DNA of 64,000 nt. It comes from Syncephalis fuscata S228 (Eukaryota > Fungi > Zoopagomycota). The stretch is taken from assembly GCA_025786725.1 (NCBI GenBank), contig JAHLTZ010000029.1, positions 281,597 through 345,596 of the forward strand. Reading direction: 5' to 3'. Within the stretch, counting starts at the first letter, position 1. Each line of letters starts with the position of its first letter. The position numbers were made by a program, and so were the translations under genes. This document shows, piece by piece, positions 39,310-62,744 of this stretch. A model generated the notes under the pieces. It searched no databases. It was not told the origin of the DNA and saw only the letters and a program-made list of their open reading frames with translations.

Positions 39310-41190
39310 TGCGTAATGTTCTAAACCGTCTAACTATTCAAAAATAGCCAAACTATTTTATTTTTAGAAATACTACCGGAAATACATAGAGAAATAGTAT
39401 AGCTAACCAATCACCTATTGAGGTGTTACAGCTATATAGCCATAATACATAATACACTTTTACAAATTATTGCCGTAATATTAGTAATACTTGTAAATAC
39501 TCACAGAAATAAAACTATTTGCAGCATATAAAAGCTAAATTTTTAACCATTTTAGCAACCCAATAGAAACGCTTACTATTTGGTTTTGTGCAATAAGCTA
39601 ATAGTTAAAACAGGAGTGCAGTCTAATTCTGGTTTATGTATAAATACCAGTTCAAATCCTTGATATGCATATTGGCTTGTAGAGTACAAAATCTCAACTC
39701 TTTTACACTTCTCACTACAACGTTTTATTTAATACATTATATCCATATATCTACATTGCATTAACTGACAGCATAGCTAACAGTAATATTGCTTTAGAAA
39801 TGAGCATATCAAACCATGAAAGCACCACTGATTTATATATGATGGACGTTCACAATATTTTTGGGAGCAATTTCTTTAGTCTGGAAGTGGAACGAAAACA
39901 ACTAATGTATATATGGGCTGAGACTGCGATTCACGTTATTATGAGCTATGTTCAAGCGCGCAACATCAATACGCCCTTCGACTAGTTATAGAACAGCCGC
40001 AAGCACTTGCGAGATGGTGTTGTTTGTACCTTCAGTTTTATGTATTAGTATATCAATACCTACAATTATGTTCAGCTTTGTCAATGTATTTCATCTAAAT
40101 ATACTATCAGTTTATTCCGGATGGGCCTTTCCCATCTCCATTATGTGCTACAGCATAGCTTTATTGCAGAAGGCATACATGATGTCGCATAAAAAACACT
40201 GGATACTTGTAATAGGTATACTATTAATTGTCCTACAAACGATAGCGCCCGTTATGATGTTAAACCTTGTTATTTTTAATATTGATTATCATCACCATAA
40301 TATTATCTATTACACATGGGACTATATTTTGCTATGGCTCTGTACGTCTGTAGCTGTCAATCTATTTCTTTCGTTGGTATTCAGCTACATGGCATATAAG
40401 CAATATCGCATATTTGGCTCTAAGACCTGGAAGTATTAGCTAATGATGGCATTCAATACATGTGCCTTGTTATGCTTTGTAATATACTATGTACCGTTAT
40501 AATGCTTTTTAATAACGTCTTGGATACTGTTACACTATCCTATTTTATTGAATGGTAAGTTTAGTTAGCTATAATATCCTGCTCTATATTTACTTGAAAT
40601 TATCACAGTTCAATCTGCTCAACTATTCTGATCGAAAATTGCCGTAGGACACGCCATATATTAAGTGAGGCTAATTGCCCAAAAACCGAAAGAATGCTTC
40701 GTATTTCGCAAATACCATCGCCAATCTATGAGACAACAAATGTTGCTGTAGCCAACCTGCCAACACTTATGCCGCATTATAATTAATATATCTAGGACAA
40801 TTGATAATTTTGGAAATGGTTGCATTGTCAATAAACTAGCTTCAATGATTGATAAACACCCTGACATAAGTGCTATTATAGCACGTAGATGTCTGCAAGT
40901 GTTTAATTGCATGAACTGGCACAAGGCTTTTTTAAATATACTTAGCCAGTTAATATTGAATAATAATCAGACACACACTACAATATTCTGCGTCTTCTGA
41001 TATAATTAGGAACATTTAAGCATACAAATAAACTATTCAGTTATTCTAAATAATGATACCTTGTTTGATGCTATTAATACGCAATAATGAATAGCATACT
41101 GCTGTATTAATTCGTCATATAGATTCAGAATAGTAAACAAATGCCACAATATTTGATTGATATTTACAGCTATTTTATATTTAATCAAAC
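39310..41190 (+). repeat. Dispersed direct duplication, copy 1 (7-TM gene plus flanks)
   Basis: Aligns by eye with ~60870-62744 and is near-identical from ~40543 to 41190. Confidence 0.9.
39800..40786 (+). pseudogene. Orphan 7-TM (GPCR-like) protein, copy 1; four 1-nt deletions relative to copy 2 (pseudogene or assembly errors); intron 40555-40608
   Basis: Colinear with 61346-62334; indels near 39972, 40027, 40437 and 40765. Confidence 0.65.
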
Positions 41191-41753
41191 GATGGCTTAA
41201 CTACACGCCATGCTATGATGTATTTTATTGCATATCAACAGCCATGTATGATCAAATTAAAGCTTTAAAAAGTATCTAAATAAGGCTGCCAACTGATTTT
41301 AAATGTTTCTCTCACGAATTTTATCGCTTGTTGGTATATTGTTCACTCTGTGCTGCATCTATCCGAACATTACAGCAGCTATACTATTTACTGGTTTTCA
41401 GTCAAAGAAAGCAGCTATGTGAGCATCACATTGATCATAGGGAGTAAGATATAATTAAAAAGTTTTATTTTATATTGATAAAAACATATGGCACAATAAA
41501 ATAAATAATATAAGATGCTATGGACAAATAAATGCAAGTATGCGAATACTGATAATAAAGGTATAGTGTGTATGACAATAAAATGAGTAAAATTAGTCGG
41601 ATTCTACAATTGATAAATCTATCAACAAACAAATGAGAGATTCAAATAGATTGTATTCAAAATACAATATGATGTCACACAGTAGAATGAATATACAATG
41701 ATAATTTAATAAACTGTTTATTGTATTTTGCCAGGCTAGTATTTGCCTTATGG

Positions 41754-42951
41754 CTATGATGAGCCTGTGCTCAGCTCTTTAGTTAAGCGTAGAAGCGATT
41801 CGATCTCTTGCGGAGTAGCCATACCGTGTGCATACCATCGAATACGCTGGTTGGCATCGACCAAGAAGACCCAACCTAGATAGGCATTGGTAATACCAAT
41901 ACGCTCTCGAATAGATTCGATATTACCATAGTGAATAATATAGTTTTGCTTATATAATTGCTGTTAGAAACGTTAGTTGCAACGGATTAGACTTACATGC
42001 CGTTCTGTTGATAAATGACGGCGAATATAAGGCTTACTCAGCCAAAGCAATGGAATCTTCAAATAGTTTTCTTGAATATTAAACTGCAAGATAAGTATGA
42101 ATAAAGCTGTAGATCAACGTAATGCCTACTTGCCTCTATTAACTGAGCTTGTTTATGATTAGTGCCGAATTCTTTAACAAACGGATCTATATAGCTGTTG
42201 ACATGGCGCTATTGTACAAATCATAAGCTAACTAGACAGCTGTAATCCATCGATTACTTGCCTCGCCAAACTGGGCAAAACACATAGATACAAGAGACAC
42301 GCGACCTTTTACTAAATTTAGACTATGAATGCGCTGACCAGTAAGTGTTGTTCCTGAGATATTCGGCAGATAGATGGCCCGCTGATGACAATTAAACATA
42401 CAATACTATATATGCAATGCAAGTACTTACACGGGCATTATTAAGCGCTGGTTTGGCTTCCCAGCGCTTTTCCCCCTTAACACGTAGATCTAAATGGTAT
42501 TTGGGATGGGTGGCTATTTATTTACACATAAAATACACGTACCATGTAAATCCTCCCAATACGATTTTTTCATATCCTTGGCTCTAAATACACGGCTGAT
42601 AAGTTAATACTGGCTATCGCTATTATTATACAATGACCATTCGTACAGTTTACTTTTACGCTCAACATGTTTTTCATAATCGACGGCATTTTTTAGCATT
42701 TGCTCATAACGTTCACGAATCGTTCGCTGGTCGATAGTCGGCGGCACATTATCATTTTGATTGGTGCTTTCAGCTTTTGGCACTTTGTCCAACGTGTCTG
42801 CAGCATGCGTTTCGCCTTTGGATGCAGCTGTCGGTCGGTTCGGCAATTCCTTGCTAGAATAATTAGCCACGGCAATGCGGGCCAGTTGAATCCGACCAGC
42901 CTGTAGCGTCGACACTCCTCGACACAATAAACTACGTTGAAATGACAACAT
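41754..42951 (-). CDS. ATP10: Mitochondrial ATP synthase assembly factor Atp10, multi-exon; 3' end approximate
   Basis: Presequence; YLPNISGTTL, FNIQENYLK and GWVFLVDANQRIRWYAHGMAT. Confidence 0.85.
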
Positions 42952-60323: not shown

Positions 60324-60869
60324 ACTTTAGATTTAATTATTTTTTAATATTAATAACACGATTATTTGTAATATTTATTTATTAAAAACGTAAACCGTTA
60401 CTTTCTAATATATATTAATGTTTATCTAACATTATTACAATCACTAATTTACAAATAATATCATTAACAACTTGTAGGCTTTGTTATTTATTATATATTA
60501 TAGTCATATACAAAAAAGCCTGTGCAATTAGTGGCGCTGATGTTATAATACGTATAGCGCAGTGAACGAGTTGAGTGGCGTGTGTTGAGTATAAATCAAA
60601 ATAGTATAGCCAGCTTACGACAAAACAAATATACAATGCAATAAAATATATGGATATAATGCATGTAAATCTATGATGATAACTATTTTGATTTCTGCTG
60701 CCACTCATCACGCAGTTCTATGTTCAATAAAATGAATATCTACTTCAACTGCACGAATATTATTATGTAAGCTCATTTGATCTTAAATCACATTAAATGG
60801 CCAATAAATTGTTTACTATTAATGCAATAAAACTACTAATAGTATTATTAAACTAATAGCATAGTTATA

Positions 60870-62744
60870 GACATATCAAATGTAACTAATGTTCAAGAAT
60901 TGCAAAGCGCATTTTCAGAAATACAATTAGCAATACATAAACAAATATATAACTAATCAGCTATTTATCAAAGTTTTACAGCTAATATAGCCATAACATT
61001 TAATACGTTTTCGCCAACTGTTGCCGTATCTTTAGCAACATTGTAAATACTTATGAGTAAAGTTGCTTACAATATACAAGGATCAGATTTATAATCATTT
61101 CAGCAACTTGGTAAAGATTTTGCGGCTTGGCCTTGAATAATAAACTAATGGCTAAACCGGAATGCAATTTGGTGCTTGTTTATGTATAAATACAAGTTTG
61201 AATTCTCAATATGCATATTGGCTTGTAAAGCACAAAATCTCGGTTCTTTTACGTTTCTCCCTGCGGTGCTTTATTTAATACATTATATCCATATATCTAC
61301 ATCGCATTAATTGACATCATAGCTGATAGTAATATTGCTTTAAAAATGAGCACATTGCATTCTAATAGCACTACTAATGCCCATCCCATGGGTGCTTATG
61401 AGTATATAGAAGTATACTCTATTACTTTGAAAGGAATGCGAGCACATTTAAGATATATTTGGATGCTACTTGTGCTTCATTTATTATGGGATATGTCCAT
61501 GCGCGCAACGCCAATATCGCTCTTCGACTAGTTATAGAACAGCCGCGAGCACTTGCAAGATGGTGCTGCTTGATACCCTCAATTTTGTGTGTTGGCATAA
61601 CAATGCTTACAATTATGTTTCACTTGGGCAAAGCCTTTTATTTGGATACACCAGCGCTTTATTCCGGATGGGCTATTCCCATCTCCATTGTGTGTTACAA
61701 TATAATTTTGCTGCAAAAAGCATACATGATATCACATAAAAACCGCTGGATACTTGCAATAGCCATAGTATTAATTATGATACAAGTAACAGCCCCCATT
61801 ATGACGTTAAACGTTGGTGTTATTCGTGATATTAATTTATATCGCCAAGGCTTTTCCCTTTATTCAGAAAAATGGACTCTGGTGTGGTTCTGTGCATCTG
61901 TAGCTGTTAACACATTTCTTTCGTCGGTATTCAGTTACACGGCATATAAGCAATATCGTATTTTTGGTTCTAAGACCTGGAAGTATTTAGCTAATGATGG
62001 CATTCAATACATGTGCCTTACTATGCTTTGTAGTGCAGTCTGGCCTGCTATATTGTTTCTTGGTAAATTTTGGAAGCTCACTGCTTTTTTCTACTTTATT
62101 GAATGGTAAGTTTAGTTAGCTATAATATCCTGCTCTATATTTACTTGAAATTATCACAGTTCAATCTGCTCAACTATTCTGATCGAAAATTGCCGTAGGA
62201 CACGCCATATATTAAGTGAGGCTAATCACCCAAAAACCGAAAGAATGCTTCATATTTCGCAAATACCATTGCCAATCTATGAGACAACAAATGTTGCTGT
62301 AGCCAACCTGCCAACTACTTATGCCGCATTATAATTAATATATCTAGGACAATTGATAATTTTGGAAATAGTCGCATGGTCCAATAAACTAGCTTCGATG
62401 ATTGATAAACACCCTGACATAAGTGCTATTATAGCACGCAGATGTCTGCAAGTGTTTAATTGCATGAACTGGCACAAGGCTTTTTTAAATATACTTAGCC
62501 AGTTAATATTGAATAATAATCAGACACACACTACAATATTCTGCGTCTTCTGATATAATTAGAAACATTTGAGCATACAAATAAATTATTCAGTTATTCT
62601 AAATAATGATACATTGTTTGATGCTATTAATACGCAATAATGAATAGCATACTGCTGTATTAATTCGTCATATAGATTCAGAATAGTAAACAAATGCCAC
62701 AATATTTGATTGATATTTACAGCTGATTTTATATTTAATCAAAC
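60870..62744 (+). repeat. Dispersed direct duplication, copy 2
   Basis: Matches ~39310-41190; conserved TATAAA at 61185 (39639 in copy 1). Confidence 0.9.
61346..62334 (+). CDS. Orphan 7-TM (GPCR-like) protein, copy 2; intron 62106-62159; one frameshift in a T-run ~61481
   Basis: Seven hydrophobic segments, an N-terminal NST sequon, and basic loops RNANIALRLVIEQPRALARW, LLQKAYMISHKNRW and YKQYRIFGSKTWKYLANDGIQY. Confidence 0.75.

Follow-up and report, generated by a model that had tools for sequence, protein, structure and literature searches.

The question raised by this locus is why two copies of one gene in the zoopagomycete fungus Syncephalis fuscata S228 should be almost identical along some short stretches and strongly diverged along others. 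Both copies, which we refer to as A (39800–40786) and B (61346–62334), lie on the forward strand of the window, by which we mean the whole 64,000-nucleotide stretch analysed here, the last 64 kb of contig C212 (JAHLTZ010000029.1; C212:281597–345596) in an assembly of 29.4 Mb and 371 contigs (GCA_025786725.1). A reading of the window made from its sequence alone (the sequence-only reading) had taken them for paired orphan seven-transmembrane receptors and had attributed the alternation to diversifying selection on a ligand-binding surface combined with a fixed signalling interface. We consider it probable that A and B, together with a third copy from contig C367, are members of a subclade that comprises about 15 loci and is so far known only from S. 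fuscata, within a Zoopagales family of seven-transmembrane (7TM) proteins with at least 150 loci, and that the alternation is shaped by three layers: family-wide purifying selection on the cytoplasmic face, near-absence of constraint on the extracellular face with a signal of positive selection at a few codons, and recent recombination at the 3' end.

The alternation itself is plain from an alignment of the two copies, in which windows of 30 nt range from 11–13 to 28–30 identical positions, with the lowest values in the N-terminus and in the predicted extracellular loops (ECL) 2 and 3. All of the peptide strings quoted in the sequence-only reading are found in A and B, where they are readable only by skipping frame breaks, and it is correct, as had been claimed, that the variable patches (non-synonymous divergence, dN, of 0.80) have diverged further than the 5' flank (K = 0.30, at 75% identity). 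Self-BLAST finds one large repeat in the window, 39360–41190 against 60911–62744 (82% identity over 1848 columns, both forward strand), which corresponds to a duplicated unit of promoter region, gene and 3' flank; the B unit ends 1.26 kb before the end of C212. Each unit has a TATAAATA box, an ATG, an exon of about 755 nt ending in ...FIEW, a 54-nt intron (GTAAGT...CACAG) and a second exon of about 175 nt. From the DNA alignment of the subfamily and the masked translation, exon 1 of copy A (39800–40554) runs from the N-terminus to the start of TM7, the intron (40555–40608) is 100% identical to that of B, and exon 2 (40609–40786) encodes the remainder of TM7, helix 8 and the tail; the corresponding parts of B are 61346–62105, 62106–62159 and 62160–62334, with a TAA stop at 62332–62334. 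This agrees with the gene structure taken as typical of the family, in which a long exon ending in ...[DEY]W is followed by an intron of about 54 nt, placed inside a Cys codon, and by a short second exon, and the splice junction is the same in the annotated paralogs P0001 (311 aa) and P0003 (309 aa).

The positions of the conserved and variable stretches relative to the membrane were read from a structural proxy, P0003, which is 62% identical to B and to which both copies align without gaps in the helices. The AlphaFold2 model of this protein, made with a 49-sequence alignment (pLDDT 81.7, pTM 0.78), has seven long helices, a β-hairpin in ECL2 and a short helix 8. Support for an N-out topology comes from the number of Lys plus Arg residues per sequence, which is 14.4 in the inner segments against 2.0 in the outer loops (49 proteins), and from an N-x-S/T sequon within the first 45 residues of 39 of the 49 proteins, and the seven helices and N-out orientation assumed in the sequence-only reading are therefore upheld as a prediction. 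On the P0003 model the conserved strings are cytoplasmic, at the ends of TM1/TM2, TM3/TM4 and TM5/TM6, and the variable strings form the N-terminus and ECL1–3, again as had been proposed. The conserved parts of B (all on the forward strand) are the first cytoplasmic segment NANIALRLVIEQPRALARW (61507–61563), the TM3 end with intracellular loop (ICL) 2, QKAYMISHKNRW (61714–61749), in which LLQKAY is invariant throughout the family, and the TM5–ICL3–TM6 hairpin AYKQYRIFGSKTWKYLANDGIQ (61942–62007), which is the most conserved block of the family and differs between A and B at three synonymous and no non-synonymous positions. The ratio of non-synonymous to synonymous divergence (ω) between A and B in the first of these is 0.50, a value resting on just three non-synonymous differences. 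The variable parts are ECL1 HLGKAFYLDTPAL (61621–61659; 40074–40112 in A), ECL2 with its modelled β-hairpin (61813–61878; about 40266–40328 in A), and ECL3 GKFWKLTAF (62062–62088; 40511–40537 in A), with 25 non-synonymous (Nd) and three synonymous (Sd) differences in ECL2.

The description of A and B as a pair did not survive a search of the genome, where at least 151 scored loci (from 324 candidates in 29.4 Mb) match the 216-aa open reading frame (ORF) of B at E values of 1e-13 to 1e-144. A and B match members of this family at 1e-30 to 1e-86, about 15 S. fuscata loci fall into their own subfamily at the DNA level, and the sequences sampled cover about 76 of the 151 loci. The inner motifs WCCLxPS, ILLQKAY and FSYxAYKQYRxFGSxxWKxLAxDGIQ, all present in A and B, are found family-wide, so that the inner-loop conservation is no peculiarity of these two copies as had been supposed; among 49 proteins the most common residue has a frequency of 0.72 in ICL2 and 0.75 in ICL3, compared with 0.42–0.46 in ECL1–3. 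A profile search of a word-indexed protein collection retrieved 69 proteins from three Syncephalis species, Thamnocephalis sphaerospora and metagenome contigs, and an exhaustive search of 1.84 billion representatives returned 296 at E ≤ 1e-3, among which ten weaker listed matches that we checked were again Syncephalis, Thamnocephalis or metagenome sequences without a name. The sources of the relatives are S. fuscata, S. plumigaleata, S. pseudoplumigaleata, Thamnocephalis and metagenome contigs, and as far as we have seen the family appears to be restricted to the Zoopagales. It is large, arrayed in tandem and includes pseudogenes, and in the literature searched on GPCRs (G-protein-coupled receptors) or receptors of Syncephalis and the Zoopagomycota we found no paper on it.

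Within this family the A/B subclade stands apart. A pair of cysteines at the ECL1/TM3 top and in ECL2 (P0003 residues 100 and 169; alignment A2) is present in 46 of the 49 family proteins, from four species, and is lost only in the A/B subclade, which has M/L plus V/G-type residues instead. The subclade is also without the N-terminal W-x2-NAT-x4-IPLHPxGE motif (GIPLHPxGE in the main family), and among the 211 proteins retrieved it is represented solely by S. fuscata. In sliding windows a copy on contig C101 is nearer to B than A is over most of exon 1, and the star-like exon-1 tree joins B to the C101 copy (support 90/94), with A about as distant from B as from the remaining copies. We do not claim that A and B are not sisters in exon 1, since the approximately unbiased (AU) test leaves an A+B clade unrejected (p-AU 0.32), and for this reason confine ourselves to the statement that the nearest exon-1 relative of B is the C101 copy.

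The contrast between the two faces was quantified from Nei–Gojobori counts, and in this as in all other codon analyses the frame-broken codons were masked and never filled. Between A and B ω is 0.16 in the inner loops, 0.45 in the TM helices and 1.39 in the outer loops (Nd 50, Sd 11), the last not significantly above 1. Five independent pairs from the subfamily give 0.19 (interval 0.12–0.30), 0.39 and 0.82 (0.57–1.19), respectively, and pairs taken across the family give 0.17, 0.39 and 0.41 (0.29–0.62) when close (eight pairs) and 0.17, 0.30 and 0.66 (0.47–0.90) at middle distance (six pairs), so that the outer-loop ω of the A/B subclade is higher than that of the main family. As the synonymous divergence (dS) of the five subfamily pairs is near-identical in the inner, TM and outer compartments (0.54–0.58), the contrast reflects constraint on the protein and not mutation rate or conversion. 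The difference between inner and outer loops that the sequence-only reading had proposed is present in ω (0.16–0.19 against 0.8–1.4), and the outer value is not significantly above 1.

We suggest that the family proteins, of about 310 residues with seven helices and a GPCR-type fold, are held by a first layer of family-wide purifying selection on the cytoplasmic face, covering the ends of TM1 and TM2, LLQKAY at the end of TM3 and the hairpin AYKQYRxFGSxxWKxLAxDGIQ. Most plausibly, a single intracellular transducer shared by all members would dock on this face. In the second layer, the extracellular N-terminus and loops would be near-unconstrained, and we read the outer face of the A/B subclade as essentially unconstrained, with the cysteine pair lost and a signal of positive selection at a few codons of ECL1–3.

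A third layer is seen at the 3' end, where the intron is 100%, exon 2 97.7% and about 400 bp of non-coding 3' flank 97.8% identical between A and B, compared with 72% for exon 1 and 75% for the 5' flank. The tract is about 650 bp long and about 98% identical (40535–41190, forward strand; 62086–62744 in B), and takes in the end of exon 1, the intron, exon 2 and the 3' flank; identity is unbroken over as much as 132 nt, whereas permutations gave runs of at most 63 nt (P ≤ 2e-4). The near-identical C-terminal tail, which the sequence-only reading had listed among the conserved inner parts, must be ascribed to recombination and not to protein constraint because the tract spans the intron and non-coding flank, and we conclude from the alignment that the tract is the product of recent gene conversion or ectopic recombination. 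The third copy (L032 / L051, C367:4663–7287, on a 29-kb contig) is 98.4% identical to B over 2.1 kb and is a hybrid, with a B-type 5' flank (back to 60624) and exon 1 joined to an A-type 3' flank reaching 41704, which indicates that ectopic exchange among the copies is ongoing. We considered whether C367 might be the junction of a tandem duplication or a haplotig and rejected both, as its homology to the window stops at 60624 and 41704; with homology ending on both sides, it is either a separate locus or a chimeric contig.

Such exchange invites the proposal that the whole mosaic was produced by gene conversion among paralogs, with some blocks homogenised and the rest drifting, and without any selection specific to one face. 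The 3' tract and the composite C367 copy both speak for it, as does the range of dS between A and B along exon 1, from 0.16 to about 2 (on small counts). We nevertheless regard it as very unlikely, since in the five independent pairs dN differs about fourfold between compartments of equal dS, the inner/outer contrast is also found family-wide in four species, and the variable patches have no donor. Borrowing of these patches from a third paralog was ruled out for lack of a donor elsewhere in the genome: the N-terminus and the ECL2 patch of A have no second genomic match, and the ECL3 patch of B matches only itself and the C367 copy.

Whether the outer face is under diversifying selection, as the sequence-only reading had it, or merely released from constraint was addressed with the site models M1a and M2a, using our own code on the first exon of 12 subfamily members (GY94-F3x4, branch lengths taken from a nucleotide tree and scaled freely, and a single dS assumed across sites). 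Twice the log-likelihood difference (2ΔlnL) between M2a and M1a is 47.5 for all codons and 36.3 for codons 36–253, and with their own trees it is 29.2 for codons 136–253 and 3.7 for codons 36–135; in 14 simulations under M1a the maximum was 8.2 and the others were below 5.2. The additional M2a class holds 4–8% of codons with an ω of about 3.5–4.3, and the sites with a posterior above 0.9 (codons 2, 3, 23, 24, 95, 175–177 and 242–244 in P0003 numbering) are all predicted to be extracellular, codon 95 lying in ECL1, 175–177 in ECL2 and 242–244 in ECL3. The claim of diversifying selection thus keeps its support at the level of a few extracellular codons and loses it at the level of the loops as a whole, and positive selection at a few ECL2 and ECL3 positions is suggestive but not secure.

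These results bear directly on the proposal that the two copies form a dedicated host-recognition pair, kept apart by diversifying selection on the ligand surface and with a fixed signalling interface. The A–B outer-loop ω of 1.39, the 25 to 3 excess of non-synonymous differences in ECL2, the likelihood ratio test favouring ω of about 4 at extracellular codons and the membership of the organism in a lineage of obligate mycoparasites are all in its favour. We think the proposal unlikely given a family of at least 151 loci with about 15 in the subclade, an exon-1 tree that places B beside the C101 copy (90/94) and shows no special closeness of A to B, inner motifs common to the whole family, an outer-loop ω not significantly above 1, and the frame-broken state of both copies in the assembly.

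The fold of the family was examined further with the P0003 model. All of the approximately 45 matches listed by Foldseek against the PDB were class A or class C GPCRs (E 7e-5 to 1.3e-3, TM-score about 0.5), an outcome in line with the GPCR fold suggested by the sequence-only reading, and VIA-align gave Z values of 16–18.6 to GPCRs. Shape neighbours in Atlas were mixed 7TM sensor families, with a pheromone receptor (0.89, by feature) and Fung_rhodopsin (TM-score 0.62, by shape) as leads only. At the sequence level, neither A nor B had a Pfam-A family match at E ≤ 1 and the 49 members had nothing more than isolated chance matches, and in hmmscan of the 49 members none matched Ste2, Ste3, Git3/Gpr1 or PTH11 at E ≤ 1, which bears out the earlier remark that the proteins do not resemble these classes. 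There was also no match at E ≤ 1 among the 49 members to the Pfam models Dicty_CAR, PAQR, 7tm_1, Chs7, Bac_rhodopsin, Srx or Fung_rhodopsin, and the family profile found no GPCR match at E ≤ 10 among PDB sequences. UniRef names four orthologs automatically as a Srx serpentine receptor, GPCR family 1, GPCR family 3 and a chitin synthase export chaperone, and because these conflict we treat them as weak and non-specific profile matches. On the basis of the model we conclude that the predicted fold is of GPCR type, and we find no support for placing the family in a described class.

Comparison with known systems illustrates this position. The family shares with class A GPCRs (orexin, NPY, opioid and olfactory) a seven-helix N-out fold, the ECL2 β-hairpin, helix 8, a conserved cytoplasmic TM3 end and TM5/TM6 and, in the main family only, the two cysteines located at the top of TM3 and in ECL2, whereas the A/B subclade is without the pair that forms the class A TM3–ECL2 disulfide. 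It differs from them in having no 7tm_1 match and no DRY, CWxP or NPxxY motif, and in an identity of only 10–15% in structural alignments at a TM-score of about 0.5; at the class A positions it has motifs of its own (LLQKAY at the TM3 end, MCLxxLCNxxC in TM6 and FxxxDW-CxxCSTILxxNC in TM7). As in the nematode Srx-type and Pezizomycotina PTH11 expansions, we see a large tandem family of fast turnover with pseudogenes, a variable outer and a constant inner face, but it has neither a Srx or Fung_rhodopsin Pfam match (E ≤ 1) nor a CFEM domain. With the microbial (type I) rhodopsins it has in common the overall seven-helix bundle (VIA-align Z about 17), and it differs from these in having no conserved TM7 lysine and no Pfam match and in its long cytoplasmic helical extensions, which are absent from the rhodopsins.

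Several observations weigh against the explanation that we prefer. With regard to the fold, the VIA-align Z of about 17 to microbial rhodopsins means that GPCRs cannot be separated from these by Z, and the three class A motifs are absent from the family alignment as well as from A and B. With regard to selection, the outer-loop ω at the level of regions is not above 1 (the confidence interval includes 1), 2ΔlnL falls to 11.9 with the nine frame-intact copies (that is, without A, L035 and L043, which are frame-broken or stop-bearing), pN and pS at the flagged sites are both 0.48 when counted pairwise, and recombination, which is evident among the copies, can inflate the M1a/M2a test. Finally, A and B are frame-broken as assembled, the NCBI-derived protein set has no model for either of them (the best match to B is 62% identical), and the deletion in B recurs in the C367 copy, whose independent assembly makes a true mutation the more likely.

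The first of these points could be taken to mean that the family is some other kind of 7TM protein and not a signalling receptor, such as a transporter, a Chs7-type cargo protein or chaperone, or a rhodopsin-like protein. A rhodopsin Z equal to the GPCR Z, the automatic name "Chitin synthase export chaperone" of one ortholog, and the lack of any GPCR motif or Pfam match are in favour of this. However, the TM7 columns of the family alignment hold no conserved lysine at the retinal site, the Chs7 and Bac_rhodopsin models are unmatched in the 49 members, and the several-hundred-fold expansion, variable outer loops and near-invariant cytoplasmic hairpin, together with helix 8, the hairpin in ECL2 and the extracellular pair of cysteines, resemble chemoreceptor repertoires. 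Repertoires of this pattern are known in nematode, insect and vertebrate families, and we consider a non-receptor function improbable.

The state of the reading frames requires closer attention. Alignment with 12 subfamily members places 1-bp deletions in copy A after 39971, 40026 and 40435 in exon 1 and after 40763 in exon 2, plus an in-frame 3-bp deletion after 40268, and a single 1-bp deletion in copy B after 61480, in TM1, where it shifts the ATG frame to that of the 216-aa ORF. All five frame breaks are single-base deletions, with no insertion or nonsense substitution among them, and when they are masked there is no in-frame stop in the approximately 305 codons of A or B. All 21 family-invariant residues (alignment A1) are kept in both copies, and with the inner-loop ω of 0.16 and the open frames this means that the usual signs of neutral decay are absent. 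We therefore have evidence that, as judged from the codons, selection acted on A and B through almost the whole of their divergence, and the frame breaks are either errors of the assembly or inactivations of very recent date.

The assembly is known to contain errors of this type. The near-identical contig ends C257:285159–289375 (L035) and C171:2427–6969 (L036) differ over 4.2 kb by 24 indels but by just three mismatches; of the indels, 21 are single-base gaps in one contig, many of them in homopolymers. From this excess of indels we conclude that the assembly holds uncorrected single-base deletion errors, which must affect any pseudogene call made in S. fuscata, and such calls need a check against the reads first. 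A comparable pattern is seen in exon 1 of the C367 copy, which has no substitutions and three deletions relative to B.

It is nonetheless quite possible, though somewhat short of an even chance in our judgement, that all three copies (A, B and that on C367) have lately become pseudogenes in a birth-and-death family, and that their loop pattern is a relic of earlier selection with no function today. The four frameshifts in A and the one in B that is common to C367 fit this proposal, as do the missing protein annotations, the outer-loop ω of about 1 within the A/B/C367 trio, and the approximately 26 of 151 family matches that carry stops, by which pseudogenes are to be expected. What sets a limit to it is that the breaks are exclusively single-base deletions, that the 21 invariant residues and the inner-loop constraint are intact, that deletion-type artefacts have been demonstrated in C257 against C171 and in exon 1 of C367 against B, and that only about 2 kb separate B from the end of its contig. 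The explanation by a constrained inner face, a largely unconstrained outer face and 3' recombination leaves room for this outcome, as the A/B pair itself may be inactive.

With regard to function, the combination of fold, N-out topology, near-invariant hairpin, variable outer loops, tandem arrays and several-hundred-fold expansion suggests, by analogy with chemoreceptor repertoires, a putative signalling role in which many specificities would be fed into one transducer and host or environmental cues would be sensed; that the host in particular is sensed would be a further step, suggested by the lifestyle of the organism. We know of no receptor that has been named for host finding or recognition by the haustorial mycoparasites of the Zoopagales, and a family of several hundred seven-helix proteins, not in Pfam and inconsistently named by automatic methods, is a concrete candidate for host sensing. 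If its members are receptors, the known GPCR-fold receptors of fungi would be extended by a further branch. What the window contributes to this is a quantified contrast between the inner and outer faces, evidence of ectopic recombination and a derived subclade without the cysteine pair.

A more far-reaching suggestion, which we hold to be possible but rather doubtful, is that the Zoopagales have a GPCR-fold chemoreceptor repertoire of their own with 150–300 genes, in which a single invariant docking hairpin lets many ligand specificities converge on one pathway and the disulfide-less subclade is exploring new ligand space. Such a repertoire would make up a few per cent of all genes without a detectable sequence link to the described classes, and the A/B subclade would be positively selected at ECL2 and ECL3, possibly for cues from mucoralean hosts. 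In line with the explanation that we prefer, the genome has at least two G-alpha loci, 15 kb apart at C306:469482–470473 and C306:484604–485961, and the six-frame match to the second of these contains many stops, which may come from introns, decay or assembly gaps. There is also a weak G-alpha-like match in the window at 17263–17505 (forward strand, 33.9 bits, below the Pfam cut-off) in a 133-aa open frame, which may be a GTPase exon.

The remaining features of the locus are minor. The TATAAATA box of copy A, read directly from the sequence, lies on the forward strand at 39639–39646, about 155 nt upstream of the ATG, and is kept in copy B at 61185–61192, where as in A it would be a putative promoter element; over the 160 nt of 5' flank nearest to the gene the copies share 84% identity. 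An Rfam scan of 38000–64000 gave no match. In both copies the near-identical 3' tract also holds short ORFs of 51–87 aa on both strands (40661–40924 and 62319–62477 on the reverse strand, 40845–41000 and 62353–62553 on the forward strand), which are probably chance frames in the 3' untranslated region or flank. Beyond copy B only window positions 62745–64000 remain before C212 stops, and the repeat may have broken the assembly there.

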